Below, one piece after another: positions 5,531-64,000 of a stretch of DNA of 64,000 bases. A model generated the notes under the pieces. That model saw nothing but the letters and a program-made list of their open reading frames with translations, made no database searches and was not told the DNA's origin. How positions within the stretch are numbered: position 1 is the stretch's first letter; every line of letters starts with the position of its first letter. The stretch spans positions 620,001 to 684,000 of the forward strand of contig JAPDFW010000147.1 of assembly GCA_028826165.1 (NCBI GenBank), written 5' to 3'. Origin of the DNA: Anaeramoeba ignava BMAN. Taxonomy: Eukaryota; Protista; Anaeramoebae. Position numbers and translations under genes: made by a program.

Positions 5531-5658
5531 TCAAATTGATTTATTAATTTTTATTTTTGATTTATTAATTTTTTCATTTTTATTTTTATTTTTTCATTTT
5601 TTCATTTTTTCTTTTTTTTATTTTTTCATTTTTTTTTCATTTTTTTTTAAATTTTGTT

Positions 5659-7538
<1,880 letters not shown>

Positions 7539-7711
7539 TCAAAAAGAAAATCTTTTATCTTTTATCTTTTATCTTTTTCTTTTTTTTTTCTTCAAATTCA
7601 AATTCAAAACAAAATTTTTTTTTGTATTTGGAAAAAAAAAAATTAAAAAAAATTTCATTTTCATTTTTTCATTTTTTCATTTTTTTTTAAAATTTTTATT
7701 ATTCAAATAAA

Positions 7712-8525
7712 ATGGATGAAGAAGATAATTGGAAAAAAATTGAATTACCAGAAGAATATAAAGATGAAATTTGGGTTAATATTGATGAATATGATTTAAA
7801 TTATTTTGATACAAAAGAAATACATAAAGGAATAATTATAGAAAAAGAAAAGGAAAAGGAAAAGGAAAAGGAAAAGGAAAAAGAAAAGGAAAAAGAAATT
7901 ATTGAACATTTAAAACAACAAGAAAAAGAATTTGAACAAAATCAAAATGAAAAATTTTCTCCAAATGATTTTGCAGAACCAGTTTGTTTGTTTCCAAACT
8001 CAGATTCATATAAACAAATACAAATACAAAGAGAATATCAAAGAAGAGTAAATCGTGAAAGAGAAAGAAGGATGATTTTTCTTCAATTTCAAAATCAGAG
8101 TCATTCATTTTCTTCATTATTTTCAGAAACAACTTCTGAATCAAATCAAAATGGACTTTCTGTTGAAGATATTTCACATTTACCAGTTTCAAAATATAAA
8201 CAATCTGGAGCAATTCCATCAAAGTAAAAAAAATAATAAAATAATAAAAAATAAACGAATTTTTCCGTTTAAAATTTTATTTAATTTAAAACCATCTTTT
8301 TTAGATGCATCATTTGTTTATCGGAATTTTCAAATGGTGATCTTATTCGAACTTTACCTTGTTTTCATTTTTATCATAAAAAGTAAAAAAAATTATTTAA
8401 AAAAAATCATTTAAAAAAAATCATTTAAAATAAAATAATTATTATAAAAAAATAATTATAGTTGTATTGATCCTTGGTTGTTGAAAAATAAAAAATGTCC
8501 AATTTGTAAAAGAGACGTTTTTTGA
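7712..8525 (+). CDS. C-terminal RING-H2 E3 ubiquitin ligase (3 exons)
   Basis: Spliced C-terminus CIICLSEF...LPCFHFYHK.CIDPWLLKNKKCPICKRDVF* fits the C3H2C3 pattern. Confidence 0.88.
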
Positions 8526-8654
8526 AGAGAAAGAAATTTTGATCTTTTAAAAATGAATTGGAAAATTTTTCTTTTTTAAATCAAAAATCAAAATTATAAT
8601 TATAATTTAAAATTTAAAATATAAATTTGTTCTTTTTGGTTTTGGATTTTTTTG

Positions 8655-11600: not shown

Positions 11601-14452
11601 TTTCATTTTCATTTTGATTTAAATTATAAATTTCATAATTTTCATTTTCATTTTCATTTTCATTTTCATTTAAATTATAAATTTCATAATTTTCATTTAA
11701 ATTTTCATTGAAAGAATTCAAATATAACGTTGATCCAGAAATCATTTTGGATAAAAATTCAAAAATCTTATTGACTTCTTGTAACTCCTTCCGACTCAAC
11801 TTCCTTTTTTCAAAAGAATTCCCAAAAATACTAATCTTCTGAAGATATGGACTCAAAAAATATTGGAAAATTTCTTCAACAAATTCAACTTCTTCCTTAG
11901 AAGGAATATGCCAATTAGTTCCAATAAAACCCTTGCGGTTATTCTGATAATTTTTATAATCAAATCCCCAATATTTCCAATGATTCATTCTGAAATGAGG
12001 ATCAATCCATATCTCATAAGGTACAGAACGGTATTCTGTAATATAATATCTAGTAAGACTAGTCAAAACGTTGTAAATGATTTTCCCAGCAATTTCATTA
12101 ACTTCTTTCTTTTCGTGTTTCAATGCTAGATCAACCATCAAAATAATAGGTTTTTTATACGGAAGTAAATATTTCCCAACATTATTGAAAAGCTTTGAAA
12201 ATATTGTTAAAACACGAATGATTTCAGAATCTGTACAATTTTCTCGAGGTCGAATATCCGCTTTTTCATAATCTTCAACTTTTTTCACTTCTTTTGAAAC
12301 AAGAAATAATCTCTCAAAACAAAACGGTACAAAAACTTCAAGTGTTGCTTCGGGATGTGTTATACTTGCTATCCCACAAATACTGCTCACTCGATCAATA
12401 TAGGAATCAAACACAGAATCTCCAACTAAAACTTGAAGACGAGCAAGAATTTTACTGAAAATTCTTTCTGAGCATTGAGTAAAAATTGTTGAAAAAGTAT
12501 TATTTATCAAGTCATTAATGGATATTCGAACCTTTTTTAATTTAAAAGGCGTTGAAGAGACATTGCGAGAGATCAGAAACAATGACTCAATAAATTTTAG
12601 AATCCATTCAGTCAACCAAGAAGTGTTTTTTTCAAAAACTTCATAAGCACTCATTAAAGCCATTGCTCTGTGTTCATACCCAAAATCTACAATACTCCGA
12701 ATTGCATCCAAATTTGATTTTTCTGTGTCTTTTTCATCATTTCTTTTTTCTCTCCAACTCTTCAAATCTTCTGAAGTTACAATTTCGTCATCATTCGGAT
12801 CAATAATTGGGATAAAACTGAATAAATTTTGAACAAAAAACATCACAGAAAAAGTTTTCCATGAGCTTGAAGTGTTCATTTCCTCAAGAATAATTTCTAA
12901 AAATGGCTTGAAATAATACAGCCCAAGTGTTGGTCCTTGAATTTTGGCAATCCTTTGCTTCTGAAATGTAAATAGAGTTGTTGAGATGTTTTGTAAAAGA
13001 AGAAGGGAAGCCTCTCGTTGATGGGCTTGTTCTAGTGAATCAAATCCCTTCTTGATAATTTTCATAATTCGCAAAATTGTATACTCAGGAATCATTTCTG
13101 CAAATATTTTGAATTGAGCACAAGTTGTCAATCTTAAAAAAAATGCCTTTGAATATGTTGTTTGATAAAGTACAGAAAAAAATATGTCAAACATTTCCTC
13201 TGCTTGTTTTTGAAGCGCAGAAAGTATTTCTTGCTTTTCTTTTTCTTCTCTTTGGAGCTTGTTTTTTTCCACATTACATATTCTTTTTTTCATACATTTT
13301 GTCAACTCATTCACAAAATTATGTAATTCTTTTGAAAGATTGCTAATATTTGATGGATGGAAATATGATTCAAATGCTGCTATGAATCGCTTTAAATGGT
13401 CTTTTGTTGCTTCCCATGAATAACAGATAAATGGTGTTATTTGCGTATGCACAAGATCTCTGAATAATTTAGTTCCAATCTGTTTGGTTTCAATTGGTTT
13501 TAATTGATTTTCACTTCCAATTTTCGGATTGATTTTACCAATTAATTTTGTCATTAAAAAATTTGCATTTTGTGCAAACTTTTCTGAAATGGCTTCTTGA
13601 CAAACACTTCCAGATTCATGCGTATCTTCAATTAGTCTCCCAAAAAGCGAGAGAAAATTCCCGTGCCAAGAAGGAACAGAATCTTTACAAAACAAAATGA
13701 ATTTTAAAATGAATTTTAAAATGAGGATAAAAAGAAAATTACAATTAGATTTTTTTTTTAAATACCAATCCAATCCCATGCATTTATAAGAATATCAAAC
13801 CATTTTGGAACCGAAGTAAGATTCCATGTTGGTAAAAAAAGACATAAATAAGCTTGTGAATCGAAAATTTCCAGAGAATGAATATCTAATTTTGGTAAAA
13901 ATAATCCTAACATTTCTTCTGTAACTTTTTCTGGAAAAAACTTTCTTGATAATTTTACAAGATGAATTAATTTTTTTGAATTTTGAGATTTATTAATTTC
14001 TCTTTTTTTAAGAAAGAGATTTTTTTGAACAAGTTTATAAAGTAATTCCCATGAAATTGTTAAATTTATATCATCTTGTTTCTTGTTTAATAAGCGAATG
14101 AGAAGAGAAGTCATCTTAGAAACTGTTATTGGATCATCTTGAAAAATTGAAAGAACATCAAATAATAAATTAATAATTTCTTTGCTTTCTAAATCTGGTA
14201 ATGGATATTTAAGTTGTGTGTATCTTTATTTATTTTTTAATTCAATTATTTTTTCAATTATTTTTCAATTATTTTTTCAATTATTTTCTTTTTTTTTTAC
14301 TTTTTAATTTCAAAATTTAAATTGCTAATAAAATGTTTATTTTGTGTGGTTTTTAAATCAATTAATGAAGATTTAATTGATTCTAATAAAGTTTTTTTTT
14401 CTTCTTCAATTTTAGAAGAATAATTTGAAGGTAAATTTTGAAAAATTTCCAT
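8655..14452 (-). CDS. PSME4: Proteasome activator PA200/Blm10 (2 introns, one apparent frameshift near 10875)
   Basis: Long HEAT-like protein with ISWELLY, ESYFHPSN, WHIPS, NRDPRR and NWKY motifs. C-terminal SYFV resembles the YYX/HbYX tail. Confidence 0.85.
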
Positions 14453-28915: not shown

Positions 28916-31900
28916 ATGAATAATAAAAAAGAAGAAGATGTTGATTGGGGAGATGATAATTTTACAAATTCTATAGATTGGGAAAAGAAAATTAATGATG
29001 AATGGGATTTAGAACGTCAAAAACAACAAAAAAAAAATAATAATAACAATAATGATAATGAAATAAAACAAATTTTAGTTAAAAAGCCTTGGGATTTAAA
29101 AAAAGAAACAAATCAAAATCAATTAAATCAATCAAATCAATTAAATCAATTAAATCAAAATCAATCAAATCAATCAAATCAATTAAATCAATCAAATCAA
29201 TCAAATCAATTAAATCAATTAAATCAAAATCAATCAAATCAATTAAATCAATTAAATCAAAATCAATCAAATCAAAATCAATTAAATCAAAATCAATTAA
29301 ATCAATCAAATCAAAAAAACCAAAATCAATTAAATCAAAATCAATTAAATCAAAATCATGATAATGATGATAATGATGATAATCATGATAATCACGATAA
29401 TCATGAAAATGATGAAAATGATGAAAATAATGATGAAAGTGATGAAAGTGATGAAAATGATAATGAATTAAACGAAAATGATGAAAACAATAAAGATAAT
29501 TCGGATAATTTATACACTAATAAAGATAATTGGAATCAAAATGATAATATAAATGAAAGAAAACAAATTGATAATAAAAATAATTGGAATCAAACTGGAA
29601 ATGATTTAAAAGAGAAAAAAGATAATAAAGATGATTGGGATAATTTATACACTAATAAAGATAATTGGAATCAAAATGATAATATAAATGAAAGAAAACA
29701 AATTGATAATAAAAATAGTTGGAATCAAACTGGAAATGATTTAAAAGAAAAAAATGATAATAAAGATGATTGGGATAATTTATACACTAATAAAGATAAT
29801 TGGAATCAAAATGATAATATAAATGAAAGAAAACAAGATGATTTCAAAGAGAAAAAAAATAATGAAGATGATTGGCATAATTTCTATAATAAAGATAATA
29901 GAAATGAAAGAAATGAAAGAAATTATAGAAATGAAAGAAATAAAAGAAATGAAAGAAAACAAGATGATTTCAAAGAGAAAAAAAATAATGAAGATGATTG
30001 GCATAATTTCTATAATAAAGATAATAGAAATAAAAGAAATGAAAGAAATGAAAGAAATGATAGAAATGATAGAAATGATAGAAATTATAAAAATGATAGA
30101 AATTATAAAAATGATAGAAATGAACAAAACCAATCAAATTTAATTGAAAATCAACAACCAAAAGAACCTCATAAAAAAAGACAAACAAACTCTCAAAAAT
30201 TCCAACTTATCAAAAATTTCTATCAAGAACATCCAAATGTAACAAAAATGTCTGAAGAAGAAGTTTTGAAATTTCAAAAATCAAAAATGATTTCATTTTT
30301 CTCAAAAAAAGAAGAAGAAATATCAAAAATTAAACCAGTTACAGATTTTGAATATATTACTTGTTTTCCTGAAAAAATCAGAGAAACATTAAGAAGTAAA
30401 AATTTTAAAGAACCAACACCAATTCAAGCACAAGGATGGCCAATAATTTTATCAGGTCATGATTTTATTGGAATTGCAGAAACAGGAAGTGGTTAGTATT
30501 CTAAATATTTAAAATAATTTCAAAATAATTTATATTAAATATTTTAAAATAATTTCAAAATAATTTATATTAAATATTTCAAAATAATTTATATTAAATA
30601 ATTTAAAATAATTTCAAAATAATTTATATTAAATAATTCAAAATAATTTCAAAATAAATTCAAAATAATTTATATTAAATAATTCAAAATAATTTCAAAA
30701 TAAATTCAAAATAATTTATATTAAATATTTCAAAATAATTTCAAAATAAATTCAAAATAATTCTAAATATTTTATATTAAATATTTAAAATAATTTATAT
30801 TAAATATTTTATATTAAATATTTCAAAATATTTTCAAAATAATTTCAAAATAATTCCAAAATATTTTATATTAAATATTTCAAAATAATTTATATTAAAT
30901 AATTTATATTAAATATTTCAAAATAATTTATATTAAATAATTTATATTAAATATTTTCAAAATAAATTCAAAATAATTCCAAAATAATTCCAAAATATTT
31001 TATATTAAATAATTTATATTAAATATTTCAAAATAATTTATATTAAATATTTCAAAATAATTTATATTAAATATTTTATATTAAAATAATTTCAGGAAAA
31101 ACATTAACATTTGTACTTCCTGCATTGGTACATCTTCTTGCACAACCTTCATTAAGTCATGGAGATGGTCCAATTGTTGTAATTCTTGTTCCAACACATG
31201 AACTTGGATTACAAATAGCAGATGTATGTGAAAATTATGGAGGAGGATTAAACATTCACACAATTTGCATTTATGGAGGAATATCTCGCCAAGCACAAAT
31301 GAAGAAAGTCAAAGCAGGAGCAGAAATTGTAGTTTCAACACCAGGAAGACTTATTGATTTTCTTGAAAACGGAGTGATAAATCTTTCACGAACAACATAT
31401 TTTGTACTTGATGAAGCCAGATAAAATGCTTGAATTAGGATTTGAATCTCAAGTAAGACGCATTGTTCAGGATATCTCACAAGAAAGACAAACGCTTATG
31501 TTTAGCGCAACATGGCCAAAAGAGGTTCAAAGTCTTGCTACTGATGTTTTTACAAATTCTCCAATTAAATGTAATATAGGAAGTTTAAAATTATCTGCAA
31601 CTCAAAATGTAACTCAAATTGTGGAAGTAATTGAAGAGTCTCAGAAACTTAATCATTTACTTGATCTTCTTCCAAAAATTAAGTCTTTTGAGAAGATTAT
31701 TATTTTTACTGAAACAATCTCCAAAACTGATGATTTAACTGTTATTTTAAGAAAATCTGGTTATGCTTGTTTAGGTATTCATAGTGGAAAAGATCAACTT
31801 GAAAGAGAATGGATTATTTCTGAGTTTAGTAAAGGATCTCATCCAATTTTAGTAGCAACAGATGTTGCAGGTCGTGGATTGTATGGAACACATTTAAATT

Positions 31901-34720
31901 CCAAAACAAATTTAAAACAAATTTAAAACAAATTCAAAACAAATTTAAAACAAATTCAAAACAATTTAATTTCAAAATAATTTAAAACAAATTTAAATTC
32001 AAAACAAATTTAAAACAAATTTAAAACAATTTAAAACAAATTAAAAATAATTTCATTTCAAAATAATTTAATTTCAAAATAATTCCAAAATAATTTAATT
32101 TCAAAATGATTAAATTTCAAAATAATTTAAAAATAATTTAATTTCAAAACAATTTCAAAATAATTTCAAAATAATTTCAAAACAAATTAAAAATAATTTA
32201 ATTTCAAAATAATTTAATTTCAAAATAATTCCAAAATAATTTAATTTCAAATAATTTCAAAATAATTTAATTCCAAAATAATATAATTCCAAAATAATTT
32301 AATTCCAAAATGATTAAATTTCAAAATAATTTAATTCCAAAATAATTTAATTCCAAAATAATTTAATTTCAAAACAAATTAATTCCAAAATAATTTAATT
32401 TCAAAATAATTTAATTCCAAAATAATTTAATTCCAAAATAATTTAATTTCAAAATGATTTAATTTCAAAATAATTTAAATTTAAAAATAATTTAATTCCA
32501 AAATAATCCCAAAATAATTTAATTTCAAAATAATTTAATTCCAAAATAATTCCAAAATAATTCCAAAATAATTTAAATTTAATTTCAAAATGATTTAATT
32601 TCAAAATGATTTAAATTCCAAAATAATTTAATTTCAAAATAATTTAATTTCAAAATAATTTAATTTCAAAATAATTTAATTTCAAAATAATTTAAATTCA
32701 AAATAATTTAATTTCAAAATGATTTAATTTCAAAATAATTTAATTTCAAAATGATTTAATTCCAAAATAATTTAAATTTCAAAATAATTTAACTTCAAAA
32801 TAATTTAATTCCAAAATAATTTAAATTTAAAATAATTTAATTTAAAAATAATTTCAAAATGATTTAATTCCAAAATAATTTAATTTTAAAAATAATTTCA
32901 AAAAATAATTTAACAGAGATATAGAACAGGTTAATTACGTAATAAACTATGATTTCCCACTTTCTAAACAAACATACGTTCATCGAATTGGAAGAACAGC
33001 AAGAGCAGGCGCAAAAGGAATATCACATTCATTTTTTACACCTTCTTCTTTTCATCAAGCAAAAGGATTAATCAAGATTTTAAGAGAATCAAATCAACCT
33101 GTTCCTCAAAAATTAATTGATTTAGTTAATCTAGGAATAAAAAAACAAATTTCTTATAACAAAATTCATTACAGAGATCCTTCTGAAAAAATACAAGATT
33201 ATCGTTTATCTTTTTCTAAAGAACATCGACAAAGAAATGAATTTGCAATAAGACCTGATGAATATGAAGAGATACAAAAATATAATAAATATGTTGTTAA
33301 AGATGAATCAAATCAAAAACAAAATTATGAAAATGATAATTCAAATGAAAATTCAAATGAAAATTCAAATGAAAATTCAAATTTAAATGAAAATGAAAAT
33401 GAAAATGAAAATGAAAATGAAATATCACCTTATCAAGAATCAAGAGCAAAATATCATTTCCATAGATCACCTTTTAATCAAAATGAAAAACAAAAAGAAC
33501 TAAACATTCAAACAATTATCCCACTTTCTCAAGAAGAAGAATTTGAAAAATGGAAAAATCAAAGAGTTTTACCAAAAAAAGTTAATAATCCAATTTCTTA
33601 TAATATTTCAGATCAACAACAAATCCAAAATGTATATCAAGAAGAACCAAAAGATAATTTTAAACAAATGTTTTCTGAAATCAAAGAAGAACTTAAAAAA
33701 GCAATTTTAACAGAACTTCTTCAAGAAATACATAAAGACAAAGATATAAAATCATTAATTACTCAAGATTCAACATCAAAAACAAGAAATGAAGCAAAGG
33801 AAAATTTCACACCAAAACTTAATGAAAGTTTCAAACAAGAATATTCTGATCAAGAAATAAAGGAAAAATTTCATCCAAAACATCCATTTGAATCAAATGA
33901 AAATCCATATTTTCACCATTATCCTTATCCAAATCCTTATAATTATCATCATCCAAATCCTTATAATTATCCTTATCCAAACCCTTATAATTATCCTTAT
34001 CCAAATCCTTATAATTATCCTTATCCAAATCCTTATAATTATCATCAATTTCCTCATTTTGATCCATTTTCTAAAGATAATTATCCAATTCATCAACAAA
34101 CATCTTTTAAATCTTTTCCTAAAAATACATTTAATCATAATTCACCTCATTTTAAAGAAGATGAAATTGAATTTGATCAACTCCAGAAAAGTAAACAAAT
34201 TCAAAAACAAACCATTCAAGAAAGTTATCCTTATATTCCAAATCGATTTTTTCCACAAGATAAAAAAGAAGAATATTTCCAATTTCATGAAAAAGATCAT
34301 TTAGAAAGAACTGGAATTCCATATTTTAATCAAAAATCTAGAAAAGAAATCCCAAAACAAGAAGAAAATTCAATTCCTCATTATTATCCAAAACAAGAAA
34401 ACCAACAAAATCAACTTCAAAAAAGAAATTATTTAAAATCAACCAATCAAAAAGGAAATTTATCACAAAATTACATTCAAAACAAACAAAGAATAAATGA
34501 ATTTGAAAGAGAAGAATTTGGAAATCAATCTAATGATCAAAAAAGAAGGAAATTAAGAGAAGAAGAATTAAAACAAATTTTAAGACAAAGAAGAGAAGAT
34601 GCAGATTATGATGATGATTATTATAGGGATTATTCCTTTTTAAATCATCAAAATCAAAGAAATTTAGATACAAATTTTGAATTAGAAAAAGAATTAAAAA
34701 GAAAACAATTTTTTGATTAA
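28916..34720 (+). CDS. DBP2-like: DBP2/p68-like DEAD-box RNA helicase with very long N- and C-terminal low-complexity extensions (3 exons, 1-nt frameshift in the DEAD motif)
   Basis: PTPIQAQGWP, AETGSGKT, TPGRLIDFL, LDEA/DKML, SATWPKEV and YVHRIGRTARAG. The last exon is open from 32917 to 34720. Confidence 0.88.
30510..31092 (+). repeat. AT-rich satellite in DEAD-box helicase intron 1
   Basis: Tandem AAAATAATTTATATTAAAT / TTCAAAAT units. Confidence 0.85.
31895..32910 (+). repeat. ~16-bp satellite (AAAATAATTTAATTTC)n in DEAD-box helicase intron 2
   Basis: Tandem array between the GT at 31881 and the CAG at 32916. Confidence 0.88.
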
Positions 34721-34753: not shown

Positions 34754-37700
34754 TTACAAATTTTTAAACAATTCTAAAAATTGATGAAAAATTTCAGATT
34801 CATTAATCCATTGTTGAATATTTAAATTAGGATTTTTAAAATTTAAAGAATCTAATCCATTCAAAATCATTTCATAAATTTCTTTTGAATTAATCTTAAT
34901 CATAATATTTGATTGAATAATAAATTTTCGAAAAATTTGATTAAATGAAAATGGAATTGGATAATCTAATACTAAAAAAGATTCAATATCAAATTCTTGT
35001 TTTTGAGAAGAATAAATAAAATCTTCTTCAGAATCATCACTTGAGGAAAAAGCTGAAACAATTAATTCTAAAATTGATTGTAATTTTGGGAAAATAATTT
35101 CTTCATAATTTTGAAATAAATATCCAAATGAAAGAGCAATTATTTTTTTTTGAAAAGAAAATGTACAAAAATCAGAAAATATAATCATTTGATCAATAAA
35201 ATTGAGAATAAAGTGTTGATATTCTTCATTTCCATCTTTGTTTTCGTTATTTCTTTTTGATTGATAAAAATCTTGCAATATTTTTGATGAAAAAGATGGA
35301 TTATGAACGATTATTCTTGAAAAAAGAAAGATATAATTCAATTTAAGGTTTAAAGCAACCTCATCAAAATCATCTTCACAAATAATCCCTTCAAGAATAG
35401 ATTGCAAGATGTTAGTATTTGCAAGTAATTCTGAGATTCTATGAGGGATCTTATCAAATAATTTTTGTAAAACTTGAATCAAAACAAAAGTTCCTTGATC
35501 TGTAATTTTCAAAATAATTTCATCAAAAACTGAGATGATTTGAGAAGAAAATAATTCAATGAAGTCTGTAGTTTCTAATATTATGTATGCCTCAATAATT
35601 TCAAGTGATTTGAAGAGATGATCATCCATAAATAATGATATAACTTCAAGTATTTTTGGAAAAATTGTTCTCAATAATGAAAAATATTCTGAAAGATTCA
35701 TATCGATATTGGATTGATAATCAACTTGGAAAACATTCTTATTCCTCAACAAATTACACCAAAGAGAAAGAAACTCTTCCAAAATGAGAGAAGAAGTTGC
35801 AAAATTAGAATTTGCAATTTTGTTAATAATGGGGATAATAAACGGATATGTTTGTTTTGAATCTTCACCAAATGAATGTATAAATGCAGATAAAAGACGC
35901 AAAAAGGAGTTTTGAAGAATTGATTGAGAAAAGGTATTGTTTCGATGATTGAATTTTGAATTTGGAGATTCGATATTCTGCCACAAATTAATAGATATTT
36001 CAAGAATTTTGAGAAGATGAGGTTTCAAAGTATTCCCGAAATGGAACAACAACAAAAACAAAGCAGAAAAAACAGAATTGATATTATCCTCGTCAGAAAG
36101 CAAGTCTATCATTCCGATTAGATTATCAATCCAAGATAAAACATGCGTTTCTTGTCCAAGAACATCAATACAAGGTGAAATTATTTTAAGTGTTTCAACA
36201 GCTTGAATTTTAACAATGATATTTTGACTTGAGATTGCATTTGTGATTAATTGAAATGCTTGAGACTGAATTTCTTGCGGAATTTTTCCAAAAAGAAATA
36301 TACCGAGGATCCAACAAACTCGACGAAGAAGAATTCCTGAAACATCTTCTTGAGTTTCAGGAAGAAGATGATTTAAGAACCATTCATTAAAGTTGATTCT
36401 TTCAAAAAGCGCAAAGGAACCCAATCCAATAAAACGATAAATTGCATCTTTGGTTAGCACATTTTCTTTAGTAAATTCGTTGTAATCTTGACCCAGAAGA
36501 GCAGTGTATAATTCAAGTGAAACTGAGGAAACCAACTCTGGAAATTCCTCATAGAGAGTTTCAATAAAACGTTCTGCTGCAGGAACAATATCATATCTCC
36601 AGCTATTGAATGTGGTTCTTTTGATGTAATTTTCTTGTTCTTTTTCTTGTTGCCATTGTTCTATATCTTCGTCTGTCATCACAAATATATTTTGAACAAG
36701 AGATTTTGCACATTAAAGATATGGTTTCTGGATTGATAATCTCCTTTACTTCAAGATGTGAAGACAAAATATTTAACCATTCCATAACAAATATCAATTC
36801 TTCAATGAAAAAAATTGATTTTTTTGATGATTCTGTATTTGAATATTGTGAAATAAATGAATAAATTTCTTCAAGTAAAATTTTCATAATTGGAAATATA
36901 TTGCTTTCAAAAAGCACTGGCAAATCTTTGTGTTGATAAAGAAATCTCATCATATAAATGCTTATATATTCATTCATTTCTAATTCTTCCTGGTTTTTTA
37001 TTTTTGAATTTTCTTCACTTCGTTTTTTATTGTTTTGGATTAAAAGTTCCCATTTGATCACAAATTGTGTAAAAAATTCTTGGAAGTTTAACTCTAGATT
37101 AAGTTTGTTTGATCCTTTGATTAAAATTGCCAATGATTTTGTTATTGATTTGATATTTTTTCGCATATTTTTGCAATTAAATTCATTTGGTTTTTGCGAT
37201 ATTTCTTTTTCTGAAATCAATTTTTCGTTGAAAGCAAAAACTTGATTTAATTGTGATTCAAAAATAGAATTTAACATTGGGAAGATTTGAGATATGGTTT
37301 GCTGAATAAATTGAGGATAAAGGTTGATTGAATCTTCATTTATCACTTCAAAAATCATAAAATATAATAATTTGATTTTATGTTTGTTTTTAAAATTTGA
37401 TAAATTTTCAATGGAAAAAATGTTTCCAATAATTTCTTCAAGCATTGGAAGCCTATTTGAATAAATAGTAATAAATAAATATTGCTTTAAAAGTTTTATA
37501 ATTTCATTTTATTTTACCAAGAATCTGGTTTTTCTTGTGAAAATATTTTAGAAATTGTGAGAGAATTTTGGATTAAAATCTGTTTTGTTTTGTTTTTTTG
37601 AATTTTTAAAATTAATTTTCTTTTAATAAATATAATTTATAATATTTTTCACAAACATTATTTTGGTTTTCGTTATTATCATCTTTTTCCAAAATATTAA

Positions 37701-52742: not shown

Positions 52743-55700
52743 ATGAAAAGAACTTTAGAAAATACAAATTTATTAAATTTAAATAATTCTCAACAACAAC
52801 AACAACAAAATGTTTCTTTTCAAATTAAACAACCAAGATATTCTTCAAAAGTCAATCAATTTATTAACCAAAATATTACTTTAAATCAATTTAATCAAGT
52901 TTTAATAAATAATTCAAATTTAAATTCTTTACAAAATGAACAAGAATCTAAAACTATTTTTAATGTTAACGATTATAATTTTTCACAAGTTCTTCCAAAT
53001 AATGAAAATTTAAATAAAATAATATCAACTCAATCAAATTCTTTTGATAATCAACTTCATTTTAATCCTGATTCAAATCAAAATTTTCAAATTTGTGAAC
53101 AGAAAGAGTTAAAAAAATCAATGATTTCTCAAATTTTTTCTTCTCCAAGTTTAAATTCAAATCAAAAATTTAATTTAAAGAAGAATATTTTTGAAAGAAA
53201 ACTTCATCCAAAGAATTTATTTCCAAATTCAAAGACAAATCAAAATATAAAACTAAATCAAAAACAAAATCAAAAATCAAAATCAAAATCAAAATCAAAA
53301 TCAAAAATTAAATCAAAATATAAATCAAAATCAAAAACTAAATCAAAATATAAAACAAAATCAAAATCAAAATCAATTCCAAAATATAAATCAAAATCAA
53401 AATCAAAATATAAATCAAAATCAAAATCAAAATATAAATATAAATATAAATCAAAAATTAAATCAAAATAAAAATCAATTCCAAAATATAAATCAAAATA
53501 TAAATCAAAATATAAATCAAAATATAAATCAAAATATAAATCAAAATATAAAACTAAATCAAAATCTAAATCTAAATCAAAATCAAAATCAAAATCAAAA
53601 TCAAAATCAAAATCAAAATATAAATCAAAATATAAATCAAAATATAAATCAATTCCAAAATATAAATCAAAATCAAAATCAAAATCAAAATCAAAATATA
53701 AATCAAAATATAAATCAAAATCAAAATATAAAACTAAATCAAAATCTAAATCAAAATCAAAATCAAAATCAAAATCAAAATCTAAATCAAAATATAAATC
53801 AAAATATAAATCAAAATATAAAACTAAATCAAAATCAAAATCAAAATCAATTCCAAAATATAAATCAAAATCAATTCCAAAATCAAAATCAATTCCAAAA
53901 TATAAATCAAAATATAAATCAAAATCAATTCCAAAATATAAATCAAAATCAAAATATAAAACAAAATCAAAATCAATTCCAAAATATAAATCAAAATCAA
54001 AATCAAAATCAATTCCAAAATATAAATCAATTCCAAAATATAAATCAAAATCAATTCCAAAATATAAATCAAAATCAAAATATAAATATAAATCAAAAAT
54101 TAAATCAAAATATAAATCAAAATCAAAATCAATTCCAAAATATAAATCTAAATCAAAATCAAAATCAAAATATAAATCAAAATATAAATCAAAATCAATT
54201 CCAAAATATAAATCAAAATATAAATCAAAATCAATTCCAAAATCAAAATCAATTCCAAAATATAAATCAAAATATAAATCAAAATCAATTCCAAAATCAA
54301 AATCAAAATCAAAATATAAAACAAAATCAATTCCAAAATATAAATCAAAATATAAAACAAAATCAATTCCAAAATATAAATCAAAATCAAAATCAAAATC
54401 AATTCCAAAATATAAATCAATTCCAAAATATAAATCAAAATCAATTCCAAAATATAAATCAAAATATAAATCAAAAATATAAATCAAAAATTCAATCAAA
54501 ATATAAATCTAAATCAAAATCAAAATCAAAATCAAAAATATAAATCAAAATCAATTCCAAAATATAAATCAAAATCAAAATCAAAATCAAAATCAAAAAT
54601 ATAAATCAAAATCAAAATCAAAATCAAAATCAAAATCAAAATATAAATCAAAATCAAAATCAATTCCAAAATATAAATCAAAATCAAAATATAAATCAAA
54701 ATATAAATCAAAATCAATTCCAAAATATAAATCAAAATCAAAATCAAATAAAATCAAAATATAAATCAAAATCAAAATCAAAATCAATTCCAAAATATAA
54801 ATCAAAATCAATTCCAAAATATAAATCAAAATCAATTCCAAAATATAAATCAAAATCAAAATCAAAATCAAAATCAAAAATCAAAATCAAAATCAATTCC
54901 AAAATATAAATCAAAATCAATTCCAAAATATAAATCAAAATCAAAATCAAAATCAAAATCAAAATCAAAATCAATTCCAAAATCAAAATCAATTCCAAAA
55001 TATAAATCAAAATCAAAATCAAAATCAAAATCAAAATCAATTCCAAAATATAAATATAAATCAAAATATAAATGAGAATGAATTAATCCCTCTTTCAAAA
55101 ATAATCACATCAAAAATCTTGTTAAAACAATACGAAAAAAGAGGTATAACAAACCTTTATAATTGGCAATACCAAGCATTAATATCTACAAACGCAATTC
55201 AAGGAGAATCCCTTTTATATTCAGCTCCAACAAGTGGAGGCAAAACTCTTGTTGCTGAAATGCTAATGATCAAAACTTTAATAGAAACAGAAAAAATTAT
55301 TCTTTTCATCCTTCCTTTTGTTGCTCTTGTTTGCGAAAAAGTGGAGGAACTTACAAATACATTCCACCCTTTAAAAATTGGTGTTCATGGATTCTACAGT
55401 AATGTTGGTGGCCAATCTTTATCTAAAAATGATAGAATCGCAGTTTGCACAATGGAAAGAGCCAATGGACTTCTAAATAAAATAATTCAAGATAATCAAA
55501 TACATAATTTGGGATTAGTTGTGATCGATGAAATTCATATGATTTCGGATGAAGGTCGTGGATTTGTTCTTGAAATGATCATTTCGAAATTAGTATTTCT
55601 GGCTACGAGACAGGATATAAATGCATCCTTCCAGATTGTGGGGATGACAGCTACAATTTCCGATCAAGATCTATCTATTCTTTCAAATTGGATTTCAACA

Positions 55701-58700
55701 AAGAAATACATCTGCAAAAAAAGACCAATTCCTTTAGTGGAATATGTCAAGATCGGAAATCAAATTTTGGACAAAACAAAAGTCAAGGTTCGAGAAATTA
55801 AATCTTCAGGAAATCGTGGTGATGCAGACCAAATTTCAGATTTAGTAAATGAAATAATTCCCCAGCATTCTGTACTAATTTTCTGTCCAACAAGAAAAAA
55901 TACTGAAAATAATGCTAAAATGATTGCCAAATTCCTTCCTCAACAAATGTCCAAATTGGGAAATGATCCAGAAATGCAGAAAAGAAGAAAATTACTTATT
56001 GAAGAATTAAAAGAAACACCTGCAGGAATTTCTCCTGAAATTGAGTCTTTGATTCAAAGAGGAATTTGCTATCATCATGCTGGATTGACTGTTGAAGAAA
56101 GAACTTTGATTGAGGCTGGATTTAGAAGAGGATTAATCCGCGTTTTAAGTGCAACAACCACTTTAAGTGTAGGTGTAAATTTACCTGCAAGAAGAGTTAT
56201 TATTAGATCTGCCAAAATTGGTAACAAACAACTTGATTCAACAAGATATAAGCAAATGTGCTTTACTTATAGTACTCCTGTTCTCTTAGAAAACTTCAAA
56301 TGGAAAAAATTAGGCAAAATTGTTGAGACAAATTCCCAAACTCGTGTAATGAGCTTCTCAAATAAATCAGGAAATGCTCATCCAAAAAAAATTACTCGTT
56401 TCTATCAAAATGGAATTCAAATTGTGAATGACTATTACCATATTTCAGTAATTTACAAACAAAATACTCTGAATTTTGTCAATCTGAATTTGATTCAAAA
56501 CACAATTGCTAAATTTCTTCTCTCAAAAATTCATCCTTCTTGTATTTCTAAAAACAAAAATGAATATCTCATTTTCCAAAAATTGTTTCCAAATTTGGAA
56601 ATTTTCATTTCTCCTTTTACTTGCACAAAAGAACATGAATTCTTTATTAATTATCAATGGATTCCTATTAAAAAATTGTTTGCAAATGATTCTTCATTTA
56701 CCTCATTTTTACACTTTGAAAAACCCAAAAAAGTTCATTTTCCTCAAAATAAACCAAAATATTCCTTTTCACTGTTTGATTTATTCCAAAATGTATCAAA
56801 ACATATTTATATACAAAAAAATCCAAATTTAAAACAATATTTCTCACATTTACCTTTCCAAGAAGATTTCATCAATGTTAATAAGTTTCTGGATCTAGAA
56901 AAACATAATCTTCAAAAAATGAAGGATTTGCCCAATATTAATATTAAATTATTCTTGGAAAATTATAAAGAACAAAAACAAAATTCACTTCAAATACCAT
57001 TGAAAATTACAAAAAAATTAATGAATCTTTTTGGGTTTCTTTCAGGAAATGAAATATTCACATTAAATTCAACAAAAAATAACAATCATTTGAAGAATTC
57101 AGAATTATTTATATTTTGTAAAAATGAAAAAATTGCTCAAAAATATTCAAAAAAGATGGAAAAAATTATTTAAAATTCAAAAAATAGAATTGTTTAATGC
57201 AAATAATAATTATCAATTTAAAGAAAACAATTTATCGTTTATAATTAAAAAGCAAATGAAAAGATTCCCAATTTTAATCAAAATCAAAAATATATTATTA
57301 ATATACTTAATTTACAAACTAATGGGAATAAGGAACTATTCTCAAAATAAATTAATTGAACCTAAAAAGATGATTATCAAAAATGAATCTTTATTAATCA
57401 ACCACCAAAAATTCTTTCTAAAAGGTTTATTCAATTCAACAAGTTTCAAATCCAAAAACAACATTGGAATTTTCAAAAGAAGGAACTTACAAATTATCAA
57501 ACAAATAAAAGGTTTAATTTTGACATGTTTTGGAACTGATTCTGGAATTTTTGTAGATTATGGCTATAAAAAACAAATTTATAATTTGCTAATGAAAGAA
57601 TATTTAAAAAAGCAAAAGCTATTCAAATTGAAGATTTTCTTCAATTTATTCACACAAAATATGGGAAAAAATAGTCTCCAGTTTTTTGTTTCCATTTTCA
57701 AAGATTGGGAACAAAAAACAAAATTTGAAATGAGAGAATTTCTTGTAAAAGGTTTAACCAAAAAAGAAAAAGTTTATGATATTGAGGTTGATTTAGATCA
57801 CAACTACATCATAAATCAAGAAAATTTGATAATTGCTCATAATTGTATTCATGAAGAAACAAGAGTCAAAATGTCAAACCAAAAAGAAATATTTAAAAAA
57901 GCAAAAGATATTCAAATTGGAGATTATGTTGCAGGAATTGATAATAATGGAGTTGTTAGCAGAGGAAGAGTCAAAAGAATTTTTCATAGAACTGGAAATG
58001 CACGCAAAATCACATTTTCTAATGGTGATAAGTTGATTTTTAGTAATCATCCAATTTGGATGTTTGACAAAAGATGGGAAAATTCAGATAATTTAAAAAT
58101 TGGAGACAAAATAGCATTAATCACAAATTTCAATAAAATGGAAACCAACTATTCTTTCAAAGAGAAAATAATATCACTTACTAATTCAAATGAAAAACAA
58201 AACTCAGAACATTTTTATGATCAGAAGAGAATTTCCAAAAAAGAGAATCTGCCGCAAGATGATTTATTTTATTTTCTCATTCCTTTCATTTGTGGATTAT
58301 TTTTTATTTGTGGGAAAATTGTCAAAAAAGGAAGTGAGAAAATAATTAAAATTAAAATTAAAATTAAAATTAGACATGAAAAACAAAGAAAAGAAAGCCA
58401 AAAATTATTTGCTAATATTTTGAAATTACTCCAAATCAAATACACAAAAAAGGTTGAAAAAAACAAAATTGAGTTCAAGATCATTTCAGAAACATTATCA
58501 TTTATTATACAAGAATTTATACTCCACAATGACAAGAAAAAGATGAATGAATTTTTTTTCGTATCTTCTGAAGAACAGATGAAATTTATTTTGGGAATTT
58601 TTTCAGGATGTAATTATACAAAAAACAAAAGCAACTTATTGAACTTCTCTTTTGGAAAAGATGAAGAAATGAGAAACTCTGTTTGTGATATTCTCCTTTT

Positions 58701-60561
58701 AATAGGCATTAATTTTTCGAAAAGAAAACAACAAAATTTGTATTCAATAGAATTGAGTAAACTGAGTAAATATAAAATTGAAACCATTAAAGACCAATTA
58801 AAGAAAGTGATATTAAAGATTAAAAATGAAAAACACCAAAATGCATTTTCAACAAATTCAATTCAAGAAATACTAAAAATGAAAGAAAAGAAAAATTTCG
58901 TAAATGTTATTAAAATCAGAGAAATGGAAAAACAGCCTCTAATCAATTATCAAGTAGATGTTATTGAAACATTTATTTGCGAAAGAATAGCAACTCATAA
59001 TTGTGGAAGAGCAGGAAGAGTAGGAATTGATACGGAAGGCGAGTCAATATTGATTGCACCAAAGAAGCAAGAAGAGATTGATAATATCTTCCAAGTTTTA
59101 GTCAACTCACCGCTTCCTCCTTTGGAAAGTACCTTCACATTAAATGAAAGCAAAGGATTAAGAAGAATATTGATTGAGTGTGTATCAAGCGGATTGATTA
59201 GAACAAAATATGATGCAGAGAGATTAATGCAAAGCACTTTGTGTAATTTTTTTGAAGAAAAAAAGCAAAAGGGAAAAATGGAAGAACTTCTTGTAAACTC
59301 TTTGAATTATCTGAAAGAAAACGGTTTTATTCAAAACAACGAGGATGAGGATATTTACCAAATTAGTGATTTGGGACAAGGAGTTGTTGATTCATGCCTC
59401 GATCTGAATGACTCATTGGTTCTTTATCAGGAATTACTAAAGGCAAAAGAAGGGTTGATTCTCGATTCCGAACTGCATGCGTTATATTATATCGTGCCAA
59501 TTTCACACAACATTCCTGTGAATTGGCAAATATATGAGGAGGTTTACTGTAGAATGAATAGAGGCTTAAAGAAGGTAGCAGATTTACTCGGTGTTTCTGA
59601 GGGATACATCTTCAGAGTAACATCTCGAATAATTGATCCTCAAAATGATACTGTGGATGAGATTGCACGAATACATAGAAAATTCTTTGTTGCTTTACTT
59701 CTTTTTGATTTGATCCAAGAAACACCTTTGCCAATCGTGTCCGAGAAATATGGAGTTGACCGAGGAGAAATCCAATCGCTAATGAATTCTGCTGGATCTT
59801 TTTCTTTTCAAGTGGCAACTTTTTGTGAGAAAATTGGTTTTCATTTACTTCATCCAATTATGATCAGCATTTCCGAAAGAGTCAATTTTGGTGTTAAAGG
59901 AGAAATCGTAAATTTGACCCAGATTCCTTATGTAAAACCCTATAGAGCTCGGAAATTATATCAAGCTGGATATGTTTCCATTGAAGATGTTGCAAAGGCA
60001 AAAGTTGAAGATATTGAAAAATTGATTAAAATTAATAAACCTATGGTTCCTTCAGGCAAATTCGAGTTGGACAACAACCAAGAATACGATCAAGAGCAAG
60101 AAGATATCCAAAAAAGAATTCAACGCAAAATCGCATTTAAAATTGTTTATGGAGCTCGTGCATTGTTGAAACAAAAACAAGCAACTTTAATTTCAGGATT
60201 GGATATTTCTCAAGATGAAAACGAAAGGAATTTGAAACAAAAATCAATGAGTTTACTCCAATCTCAACTATTTTCGCAAAGATTTGAAAATGAAAAAGAC
60301 GAATCAAAAGAACCTTTATCAATCCATACAGATTCTACATCTTATTCTTATTCTTATTCTTCTTCTCATAAAAGTGATAATTTTGAGAATGATTTATATA
60401 ATAGCAAAAATGAAAATTTCAGTATTTATCCACAAACAGAAAGTAAAAATTCGTTTGGTTTTAATGGAAATGGTGTTTTTGGTGATTTTGGTGGTGAATA
60501 TGTTGATATTCTTGATAATTTAAGGAATGAATTTAATTTTGATGATTATGATAAATTTTGA
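52743..60561 (+). CDS. HELQ-like: HELQ/POLQ-family (Hel308-like) SF2 DNA helicase precursor with two tandem inteins and a Q/N-rich N-terminus; no polymerase domain
   Basis: APTSGGKT, DEIH, GMTAT, YHHAGL, TTTLSVGVNLPARRVII, YKQM-[inteins]-CGRAGR, and HhH LTQIPYVKPYRARKLYQAG. Frameshifts in the repeat tract and at ~57160. Confidence 0.88.
53265..55072 (+). repeat. Hexamer-based repeat (AATCAA/AATATA/TTCCAA), probably coding NQ/NI/FQ
   Basis: Essentially G-free on +, so it has no GT/AG sites. It runs in frame into the helicase ORF as ...NINENELIPLSK. Confidence 0.8.
56259..57843 (+). mobile_element. Intein 1 (~528 aa) with degenerate LAGLIDADG endonuclease
   Basis: Block A CFTYSTPVLL, block B TCTKEH, C-like LFGFLSGNE, E-like FLKGLFNSTS, block F KVYDIEVDLDHNYII, block G IIAHN followed by C. 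One extra base near 57160-57165. Confidence 0.92.
57844..59001 (+). mobile_element. Intein 2 (386 aa) with degenerate LAGLIDADG endonuclease
   Basis: Block A CIHEETRVKM...KDIQIGDYV, block B FSNHPIW, C-like FICGLFFICG, E-like FILGIFSGCN, block F INYQVDVIETFIC, block G IATHN followed by the host CGRAGR. Confidence 0.93.
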
Positions 60562-60598
60562 AACAAGAAAATTATTTTTCATTTTTTTCTTTTTCAAA

Positions 60599-62377
60599 AT
60601 GAATGAAATTATATTTTTTGGTTCAAATGAATATCCAATTCTTTTAAAAAATGAACCAGATACAATAACAAAACCAATTCAATTTAAATTTGAAAATGAA
60701 AATGAAAATAAAAAACAAATTAAGCAAAATTCATCAGGTTATTTTTCAACAATTTTCCTTTTTGAAAATGGAAAAGCAATAGAATATTTATTTCAAAATG
60801 ATCCAAACCAAAATCCTGAAAAAATCCAAATTGAAGAAAATATTCAAAAAGTAACTGTTGGTCATCGAAATGAAGCTATTTTAACAAAAGAAGGAAATGT
60901 ATTTGCCAAAGGAAATGATATTAATCCAAAAAAACCAAAAGAATTTATCAATATTTCATCATTAATTGAAGATACAAAAGATAGAATAATTGAAGATATT
61001 GTTTCTGGACGGAATTCAATTTATTTATTAACTTCAAATCAAAATGCTTATGGAATTGGTTTAAACGATGATGGTCAACTTGGAGTTGATTCTGAAACAC
61101 TTGAAGAAACAGAAAAACCAATTTTAATGATGAAAAATGTTTCTAAAATATTTTCAGGAAATTCTTCTTATTTTTTTTTTCTTTTAAATTCAAATCAACA
61201 ATTATTTGGATGCGGATATAATCAATATGGTCAACTTGGATTAGGAAAATCAAGAAAAGAAGAATCAAAAATCCAAAAATTAACCAAAATCCAAAATATT
61301 CCAAAAGGTAAAATAATTGATATTCAATGTGGAGAATATCATTCAGTAATGCTAATTGAAGATGAAAATCAAAATCAAAATCCAAAAAGAAAACTTTATT
61401 CATGTGGAGATTATCGATATAATGGACTTGGCAAAAATCGAGAAGATACTTATGAATTTACTGAAATCAAATCACCTTTATTTGAAAATGATGATAATAT
61501 TCTTGATTTTTCAGTTGGAAATTATCATAGTTTGATTTTAACTTCTAATTCAAAATTAATTGGATTCGGAAGTAATTATTCTGGCCAATTAGGAAATGAA
61601 GATACAAATAATCAATTAATTCCAATTCAAATTGAACTTCCTAAATTAAGATTTAATGAAAATATTTCTAATTATCATGTTTCTTGTGGAATTTGGAATT
61701 CATTTCTTTATTATTCTCCTCCTTCTTTTTCCAATCTTGAAGAAGATTTGATAAAATTATTTAGAAGAAAAGAATTTTGTGATATTTCATTTAAAACCAA
61801 AAATGAAGAAATAATTGAAGCTCATAAATTAATATTGAAATATAGATTAAAACAAAATGAAAATCAAATTGAAAAACTTCAAGAAATTATTTCAAATAAA
61901 TCAATTAAAGAATCAAATCAAATATTTGAAATGATTTATTCGAATAATTCCAAAATAAATCCGAAATTATATTCTGAAATTAAAGAAATTATAAATTCAA
62001 ATGAAAAAATTGAAGAAACAATGAAAAGAATTTATTTAAATGAAAATGAAAATGAAAAAGATTTTATTATTGAAAGAAAAGAAAAACAATATAAATTTCC
62101 TAAATTAATATTAATAATGAGAAGTGAATTATATCGAGGAATGTTTTTATCTGTAACTGAAGATAAATCAAACAAAGTTACAGATTATAGTGAATTAAGT
62201 AATAAATCATTTCAAATATTAGAATATTGGATTTATTCAAATCAAATTAAAGAAGGAATTGAAATTACAAAAGAAATAATTGATGAACTTCAAATTGGAA
62301 TTGATTATTTTCAATTAAATCAAACAAATCCAAATTTATTTGATTTATTAATTAATAAATTTAATAATCAAAATTAA
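60599..62377 (+). CDS. RCC1-repeat + BTB/POZ protein, copy 1
   Basis: GxNxxGQLG repeats, CGEYHS, VGNYHSL, FCDISF...AHKLILKYR and a second BTB-like RSELYRGMF. Confidence 0.88.
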   Translation: MNEIIFFGSNEYPILLKNEPDTITKPIQFKFENENENKKQIKQNSSGYFSTIFLFENGKAIEYLFQNDPNQNPEKIQIEENIQKVTVGHRNEAILTKEGNVFAKGNDINPKKPKEFINISSLIEDTKDRIIEDIVSGRNSIYLLTSNQNAYGIGLNDDGQLGVDSETLEETEKPILMMKNVSKIFSGNSSYFFFLLNSNQQLFGCGYNQYGQLGLGKSRKEESKIQKLTKIQNIPKGKIIDIQCGEYHSVMLIEDENQNQNPKRKLYSCGDYRYNGLGKNREDTYEFTEIKSPLFENDDNILDFSVGNYHSLILTSNSKLIGFGSNYSGQLGNEDTNNQLIPIQIELPKLRFNENISNYHVSCGIWNSFLYYSPPSFSNLEEDLIKLFRRKEFCDISFKTKNEEIIEAHKLILKYRLKQNENQIEKLQEIISNKSIKESNQIFEMIYSNNSKINPKLYSEIKEIINSNEKIEETMKRIYLNENENEKDFIIERKEKQYKFPKLILIMRSELYRGMFLSVTEDKSNKVTDYSELSNKSFQILEYWIYSNQIKEGIEITKEIIDELQIGIDYFQLNQTNPNLFDLLINKFNNQN

Positions 62378-62555
62378 AATTAAAATTAAAATTAAAATTA
62401 AAATTAAAATTAAAATTAAAATTAAAAATTAAAATTAAAATAAAATCAAAATTAAAATTAAAATTAAAATTAAAATTAAAATTAAAATTAAAATTAAAAT
62501 CAAAATTAAAATCAAAATTTCAAAAATATTTTTTTCATTTTTTTTCTTTTCAAAA

Positions 62556-64000
62556 ATGAATGATTGTTTATTTTTTGGAAGAAATCAATATCCAATTCTT
62601 TTAAAAAATGAATCAGAAGTAATAACAAAACCAATTCAATTTAAATTTGAAAATGAAAATGAAAATGAAAATGAAAATGAAAATGAAAATGAAAATGAAA
62701 ATGAAAATGAAAATGAAAATGAAAATGAAAATGAAAATGAAAATAAAAAACAAATTAAACAAATTTCATCAGGCTATTTTGCAACAATTTTCCTTTTTGA
62801 AAATGGAAAAGCAATAGAATATTTAAAGGGAAATGATTCAAAACAAAATCCTGAAAAAATCCAAATTGAAGAAAATATTCAAAAAGTAACTGTTGGTTTT
62901 GATAATGAAGCTATTTTAACAATAGAAGGAAATGTATTTGCCAAAGGAAATGATATTAATCGAAAAAAACCAAAAGAATTTATTAATATTTCATCATTAA
63001 TTGAAGATAAAAAAGATAGAATAATTCAAGATGTTGTTTCTGGATACAATTCAATTTACTTATTAACTTCAAATCAAAATGCTTATGGAATTGGTTCGAA
63101 TAGATTTGGTCAACTTGGTTTTGATTCTAAAACACTTTATAAAACAGAAAAACCAATTTTAATGATGAAAAATGTTTCTAAAATATTTTCAAGAAATTCT
63201 TCAAATCATGTTTTTCTTTTAAATTCAAAGCAACAATTATTTGGATGCGGAAATAATCAATCTGGTCAACTTGGATTAGGAGAATCAAGAAGAAAAGAAA
63301 CAAAAATCCAAAAATTAAACAAAATCCAAAATATTCCAAAAGGCAAAATAATTGATATTCAATGTGGATTTTCTAATTCAATAATGTTGATTGAGAATGA
63401 AAATCAAAATCAAAATCCAAAAAGAAAACTTTATTCATGTGGAGAATATCAATATAATGGACTTGGCAAAAATCGAGAAGATACTTATAAATTTACTGAA
63501 ATCAAATCATCTTTATTTGAAAATGATGATAATATTCTTGATTTTTCAGTTGGAAATTATCATAGTTTGATTTTAACTTCCAATTCAAAATTAATAGGAT
63601 TCGGAAGTAATTATTCAGGCCAATTAGGAAATGAAGATACAGGAAAAGATCAATTAATTCCAATTCAAATTGAACTTCCTAAATTAAGATTTAATGAAAA
63701 TATTTCTAATTATCATGTTCTTTTGTGGACATTTCAATTCATTTCTTTATTATTCTCCTTCTTCTTTTTCCAATCTTGAAGAAGATTTGATAAAACTATT
63801 TAGAAGAAAAGAATTTTGTGATATTTCATTTAAAACCGAAAATGGAGAAATAATTGAAGCTCATAAATTAATATTGAAATATAGATTAAATCAAAATCAA
63901 AATCAAATTGAAAAACTTAAAGAAATTATTTCAAAAAAATCAATTAAAGAATCAAATCAAATATTTGAAATGATTTATTCAAACAGAACAATAAATCCAA
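62556..64000 (+). CDS. RCC1-repeat + BTB/POZ protein, copy 2 (frameshift near 63720, runs off the window)
   Basis: Highly similar tandem paralog of 60599-62377. BTB sequence continues in another frame after 63720. Confidence 0.85.

Follow-up and report, generated by a model that had tools for sequence, protein, structure and literature searches.

We analysed a window of 64,000 nucleotides from Anaeramoeba ignava BMAN (assembly GCA_028826165.1, contig JAPDFW010000147.1, positions 620,001 to 684,000). Positions below are those of the window unless called local, and the host gene and both its inserts lie on the plus strand. To judge from its domains, the stretch 55119-60561 is a HELQ/POLQ-like superfamily 2 (SF2) helicase gene, the only one of its kind in the assembly. 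Its motif VI is interrupted by two different inteins fused back to back, each consisting of a Hint domain with an inserted LAGLIDADG endonuclease domain. We consider it very probable that this tandem is genuine, and we infer for it an origin by double invasion, an ordered splicing and an assembly indel as the cause of a frame break in the first intein. The tandem arrangement and its link to the ASCC3 gene are already known from a 2023 report on this genome (Gallot-Lavallée et al. 2023, PNAS, PMC10710043).

The N-extein (55119-56258) covers the two RecA-like domains and ends with ...RYKQM in motif VI, with Pfam matches to DEAD (1.4e-26) and Helicase_C (2.4e-10). The C-extein (59002-60561) resumes with CGRAGR of motif VI and continues through winged-helix, POLQ-type helical and helix-hairpin-helix (HhH) domains to the stop codon (Pfam POLQ_helical, 4.7e-37; HTH_61, 1e-11; HHH_5). 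All the helicase motifs are intact. The C-extein is single copy genome-wide, and a second allele contig was not found in the 42.8-Mb assembly. The frame is open from about 54849 but offers no ATG in frame ahead of the helicase core, and the first exon probably lies further upstream. Ahead of the gene, at 54380-55118, there are ~700 nt of a (AAATCAAAATC)n-type repeat resembling the introns of this genome.

The outer 5′ junction reads ...RYKQM/CFTYST (slashes mark junctions), the first insert beginning at 56259. The inner junction, ...LIIAHN/CIHEET, lies at 57843/57844 and the outer 3′ junction, ...IATHN/CGRAGR, at 59001/59002. Deletion of 56259-59001 restores QMCGRAGR, the SF2 motif VI, and the intein-free numbering agrees with the Helicase_C positions. 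Both inteins have the same insertion point, between the Met and the Cys of motif VI (QM/CGRAGR), so the terminal Asn of intein 1 is bonded directly to Cys1 of intein 2. The spacer between them is zero extein codons, and extein sequence is not duplicated at the inner junction. As a consequence of the zero spacer, the Cys codon TGT at 57844-57846 serves intein 1 as residue +1 and at the same time intein 2 as residue 1; the Cys+1 of intein 2 is at 59002-59004. The only sequence that the inner and the outer 3′ junction have in common is 11 nt long (CTCATAATTGT). The two inteins agree in their final 8 nt and in the Cys codon after them (CTCATAAT/TGT; 57835-57846 and 58993-59004).

An earlier sequence-only reading of this DNA had proposed two inteins at 56259-59004, and its junctions, its restored motif and its zero spacer were all borne out. 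The cysteine at 57844 that it took to be shared follows directly from the sequence. The back-to-back arrangement stood as well, but that reading overlooked a break in intein 1, which is not one open frame.

Intein 1 (56259-57843; b′ in PMC10710043) would be about 528 aa long with the frame break disregarded. We recognized its Cys1 (56259 on, CFTYST), a block B with TKEHEF (56625-56642), two degenerate LAGLIDADG helices (57018-57053 and 57412-57444) and blocks F/G ending in ...IIAHN (57772-57843). The splice residues are present, namely Cys1, TKEH, ...AHN and Cys+1. Its assignment rests on a profile match, on homology and on co-folding. The match to TIGR01443 (intein_Cterm) scored 23.2 bits, above the cut-off of 15.6. 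When searched against its own genome, it resembled a 167-aa mini-intein in cassette 1 of ASCC3, at 43% identity in the N end and 41% in the C end. This mini-intein clears the cut-offs of TIGR01445, TIGR01443 and Pfam Intein_splicing (53 bits), and the Ssp DnaB mini-intein is among its matches.

For structure prediction, intein 1 was modelled as two chains, split at the frame break. The N and C pieces were predicted to co-fold, with an interface score (ipSAE) of 0.82 vs 0.01 for the best of three controls. The mark reached by this co-fold was attained by 51 of 78 solved complexes and by 2 of 108 mismatched pairs. Runs agreed on at least 89% of contacts, and the partners had a predicted local distance difference test (pLDDT) score of at least 77. 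In the model, the N-terminal part of Hint contacts its C-terminal part (N-piece residues 1-68 to C-piece residues 185-226), and one LAGLIDADG helix contacts the other. This is the outcome expected for a single two-domain intein severed at the break; it expresses model confidence and is no measurement.

Intein 2 (57844-59001; c′ in PMC10710043) is 386 aa long and forms one open frame. It has a Cys1 (57844 on, CIHEET), a block B with FSNHPIW (58039-58059), two LAGLIDADG helices (58285-58317 and 58585-58614), in both of which the catalytic Asp is replaced by Cys, and blocks F/G ending in ...IATHN (58939-59001). Here too the splice residues are present (Cys1, FSNHP, ...THN and Cys+1), and C1, H69, H385 and N386 are invariant in all 13 family members. 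By BLASTP, intein 2 is 30% identical over its full length (E 1e-34) to a 371-aa intein in cassette 2 of ASCC3, which passes Pfam Hom_end and LAGLIDADG_3 and just misses Intein_splicing. A sequence search of the PDB with a two-sequence profile of intein 2 returned only gp41-1, with an E of 0.31.

An AlphaFold2 (AF2) model of intein 2, built on a 13-sequence alignment, had a pLDDT of 73 and a predicted template modelling score (pTM) of 0.74, the Hint blocks having a mean pLDDT mostly above 90. The best PDB matches of this model in Foldseek were PI-PfuI, TliVMA and PI-SceI (E 2.9e-11 to 5e-8, TM about 0.6), followed by mini-inteins (E about 1e-4) and I-DmoI. As modelled, intein 2 is thus a Hint fold plus a LAGLIDADG domain. 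The Hint fold on which the sequence-only reading depended was therefore recovered in both segments: in intein 1 the N and C parts form it together in the model, and in intein 2 the modelled fold finds solved inteins with an E of 2.9e-11.

In searches of its own genome, each of the two inteins retrieved, besides itself, only its own counterpart in ASCC3, and intein 1 and intein 2 did not match each other. The ASCC3 gene, on another contig, holds both of these relatives and has two helicase cassettes, with three inteins in all. The relative of intein 1 is the mini-intein of cassette 1 (intein b, NIAQM/CFTANT...LIAHN/CGRAGRPQYD) and that of intein 2 is in cassette 2 (intein c, VLQM/CVDENS...VTHN/CGRAGRPQFD). 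The ASCC3 inteins share with the pair in HELQ the lineages, the QM/CGRAGR insertion point and the Cys+1, but in ASCC3 there is one intein per site, in separate cassettes. Further, intein b has no endonuclease, whereas intein 1 has a LAGLIDADG domain, if a degenerate one, and additional sequence inserted ahead of block B. If empty, the target sites in HELQ and in the two ASCC3 cassettes would have CAAATG/TGYGGNNGAGCNGGANGN in common. Directly after the APTGAG of the cassette 1 Walker A, ASCC3 has a ~700-nt repeat-rich GT-AG intron (local 3190-4130), which adjoins the start of the third ASCC3 intein at the P-loop.

Since each HELQ intein matches only its own ASCC3 counterpart, the two are members of two lineages that target motif VI and are not duplicates of each other. 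These sequence relationships favour two separate invasions of one motif VI site, by members of two intein lineages that are also found at the ASCC3 cassette sites. The second invasion that the sequence-only reading had preferred to a recent duplication is thereby supported. If so, an occupied homing site would be open to a second invasion.

The family of intein 2 extends beyond this genome. A profile search of 1.84 billion representatives gave 15 proteins at E ≤1e-10. The profile matches ranged from E 1e-36 to 1e-11 and all had the intein at Q(M/E)/C...HN/CG. Twelve of them were metagenomic (E 9e-36 to 1.4e-11), with the intein at Q(M/E)/C...THN/CG(R)(A/S)GR, and none was a tandem. Without the intein, these 12 proteins are Hel308-like helicases of about 680 aa, and all nine that were scanned match DEAD and Helicase_C. 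Intein 2 thus belongs to the motif VI (QM/CGRAGR) intein family of Ski2/Hel308-like helicases, which is cluster 14 of PMC10710043. In the tree, intein 2 and ASCC3 intein c grouped together at 91/93 support, although both are AT-biased.

Two of the metagenomic relatives were checked for their genomic context, and both were on dense phage-like contigs, with genes for gp32, a RecA/UvsX-like protein (RecA_N), thymidylate synthase, DHFR and Peptidase_S77. This connects an intein lineage of eukaryotes with phage-like Hel308 helicases. Named phages gave no match in tblastn with intein 2, and only two weak LAGLIDADG matches with a phage-contig relative as the query. Public homologues, looked for by a search limited by word matches and length, were not found for the ASCC3 mini-intein b, and for the intein part of the downstream open reading frame the same kind of search returned only the window's own gene call. 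On the phage-like contigs (local 5326-10065 and 4554-9293), a single stop splits the Hel308-like helicase into two called genes. This stop is ~25 codons before the motif VI intein, and the upstream half holds another intein. The neighbouring RecA-like gene is intein-bearing as well.

Both endonucleases look inactive from their sequences. The LAGLIDADG helices of intein 2 end in ...FICGK and ...FSGCN, vs ...ATDGN and ...IDGDG in its relatives, and those of intein 1 end in ...LSGNE and ...FNSTS. The acidic catalytic residue that ends each LAGLIDADG helix was found in neither intein. Despite this loss, Cys1, the block B His, the terminal His-Asn and the Cys+1 are kept in both, at only 30-43% identity to the paralogues. 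The pair would then be an immobile fossil, kept by splicing alone. That the open frames and the splice residues were long kept after the death of the endonucleases argues that the pair has been removed as protein for a long time.

The ordered or competitive splicing that the sequence-only reading expected is a reasonable supposition. How two inteins that share a cysteine could both be removed can be proposed as an acyl relay. Intein 1 would act first, its Cys1 taking the N-extein as a thioester. The N-extein would then move to the next Cys, which is Cys1 of intein 2, and Asn cyclisation would free intein 1. The product would be the first thioester intermediate of intein 2, now with its native Met at −1, so that the second reaction could follow directly. 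Intein 2 would pass the N-extein to the Cys at 59002 and depart, leaving an intact QMCGRAGR. We favour intein 1 as the first to act because it would be complete, and free to fold, while the final 40 residues of intein 2 are still to be synthesized, and because its removal gives intein 2 a Met at −1, where all its relatives have Met or Glu. In the reverse order, intein 2 would have to activate the very Asn-Cys bond that intein 1 needs cleaved, with the risk of uncoupled cleavage.

That translation and splicing of the zero-spacer pair take place in vivo, in an obligate order and with the N-extein relayed from Cys1 of intein 1 to the shared Cys and on to Cys+1, is a tentative proposal, of which we are somewhat doubtful. 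If true, it would be a chemically coupled double splicing, in which the first product is the activated intermediate of the second reaction, and which is biochemically undescribed. The pair is a useful natural test case for whether two Hint active sites can use one cysteine, and in which order.

Several points weigh against our main reading, that of a genuine tandem with an ordered splicing. The relay, like the order of splicing, is purely inferred, and two Hint active sites one peptide bond apart may be sterically hard to accommodate. Experimental precedent for zero-spacer tandem splicing was not found in the literature by phrase matching. The hidden Markov model (HMM) searches that the sequence-only reading had named as a check gave a divided result. 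Intein 1 passes TIGR01443 and the ASCC3 homologues pass Pfam, but the N-terminus of intein 1 scored 19.1 bits with TIGR01445 (intein_Nterm), below the cut-off of 24.5, and intein 2 had no direct Pfam or NCBIfam match. Intein 2 also has the longest branch of its family tree (2.55), consistent with relaxed constraint. Finally, the frame entered at 56259 ends at a TAA at 57171-57173, and as assembled the precursor is untranslatable through intein 1.

...IIAHN, intein 2 and the C-extein are read in a frame offset by +1, which opens no earlier than 57094, and intein 1 thus lacks an uninterrupted frame continuous with both exteins. The likeliest shift point is an A6 run at 57160-57165 (plus strand), inside the endonuclease domain and with the stop just downstream. 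If one A of this run is disregarded, the frames join as ...KKMEK/LFKIQKIELFN..., which reads like the strand-helix-strand segment that follows the first LAGLIDADG helix. The 304 and 1145 codons flanking the break contain no stops, vs 17-24 and 86-123 in the other frames. With ~9% of random codons being stops, 228 codons would be open by chance with a P of about 2e-10. Both sides are clearly kept as coding sequence, and the break is therefore a very recent mutation unless it is an assembly indel. We favour an assembly error, which is the probable cause, because A/T runs are concentrated in intein 1 (18 runs of at least six, vs 3-4 in each extein) and because other conserved genes of the window have one-base breaks too.

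Introns were also considered as a way around the break. None of 17 GT-AG candidates with a length of 1 mod 3 works. The sole good 5′ site is at 57118 (GTAAAA), and its use would either put a TAA at the junction or cost core endonuclease sequence. Genuine introns of this genome, as seen in the ASCC3 gene, are long, repeat-rich and ~10% GC.

Frame breaks were seen at several other places in the window. A DEAD-box helicase gene at 31071-31923 (plus strand) has one extra base inside motif II, near 31400, with both sides open. It reads ...YFVLDEAR* and resumes one frame over as ...KPDKMLELGFESQ...SAT, and this break looks like an assembly indel. A paralogue, at 62439-63999 (plus strand), of the RCC1/BTB-like gene at 60527-62377 breaks after ...NISNYHV at a T run near 63700, and its downstream frame carries on with the sequence predicted from the paralogue. 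On the minus strand, at 34757-37508 and 8658-14225, long open frames of the same strand but of different phase overlap by 107, 34 and 5 nt, with one of the junctions falling in an (AAAATG)n repeat; these may be further indels or short introns. The assembly seems to carry scattered one-base indels, and intein frame breaks in it should not be taken as decay without read support.

If the break were real, HELQ would make only a truncated N-terminal product and the tandem would be a freshly dead relic, possibly because the zero-spacer pair spliced poorly and the gene was already without value. HELQ is dispensable in many organisms. The break and its TAA are present in the assembly, no intron rescues the frame, and the long branch of intein 2 would fit a gene in decay, as would the pseudogenised inteins that PMC10710043 records for this genome. 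We still hold a recent pseudogene to be rather unlikely. The 1133 codons past the break are stop-free at 25-33% GC, so any inactivation would have to be extremely recent, the helicase motifs and the splice residues are all intact, and the similar one-base breaks in other conserved genes of the window point to assembly indels.

Two further explanations leave less room. For a chimera, in which two single-intein alleles were wrongly concatenated by the assembler, it can be said that the published report is on the same strain and possibly drew on the same data. But an allele chimera should duplicate extein sequence, and the inner junction is seamless, in frame and free of such duplication. The inner and outer 3′ junctions share only the 11 nt given above, and the assembly contains neither intein, nor the C-extein, a second time, which makes this explanation highly improbable. 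It is just as hard to credit that the assembly is correct and the break is bypassed biologically, for instance if ribosomes shift by +1 at ATT-TAA-A (57168-57174) or if the transcript slips on the A run. Skipping one base at the stop would indeed lead into the correct downstream frame (...KII/KIQKIELFN), but a known stimulatory signal or conservation is lacking, an A6 run is short for slippage, and the other breaks of the window are in unrelated contexts, which better fits random indel error. An assembly indel in a genuine tandem thus remains our preferred reading.

The pair is almost certainly the same object as inteins b′ and c′ of A. ignava BMAN in PMC10710043, listed there under POLQ (DNApol theta/eta KOG). 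The legend of Fig. 6A in that report describes the POLQ inteins as "next to each other" and puts c/c′ and b/b′ at one and the same helicase-domain site, and each POLQ intein is given as homologous to one intein in one ASCC3 cassette. The literature check that the sequence-only reading had called for thus led to adjacent POLQ inteins already in print. The report counts 103 inteins in this genome, and the rarity of nuclear inteins assumed by the sequence-only reading does not apply here. Our own inventory agrees with the report, with five inteins in PRP8, three in a dynein and three in ASCC3. The main text, in the part that was available, mentions neither the absence of a spacer nor the shared Cys, and is likewise silent on the frame break of b′ and on the order of splicing. 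According to the report, these KOGs lack inteins at orthologous sites elsewhere. To this picture, the Hel308-like helicases of the phage-like contigs add members of the c family at the homologous site in motif VI. Among publications on tandem, nested, adjacent or same-site inteins, searched by phrase matching and thus a weak negative, a zero-spacer pair appeared only in the Anaeramoeba figure legend.

Intein 2 resembles PI-PfuI, TliVMA and PI-SceI (PDB 1dq3, 7qss and 1vde) in that its Hint domain is interrupted by a LAGLIDADG domain. It differs from them in having only 10-14% identity, in host and insertion site, and in the replacement of the catalytic Asp in both motifs. As for the pair, the closest likeness is to MCM-a and MCM-d of Haloferax mediterranei (PMC10643990), where two LAGLIDADG inteins also lie close together in one NTPase gene and where the double state arises by invasion of a singly occupied allele. 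The Haloferax inteins occupy two sites with extein between them, each has a +1 residue of its own, and their endonucleases are active, whereas the HELQ inteins share one site and both their endonucleases look dead.

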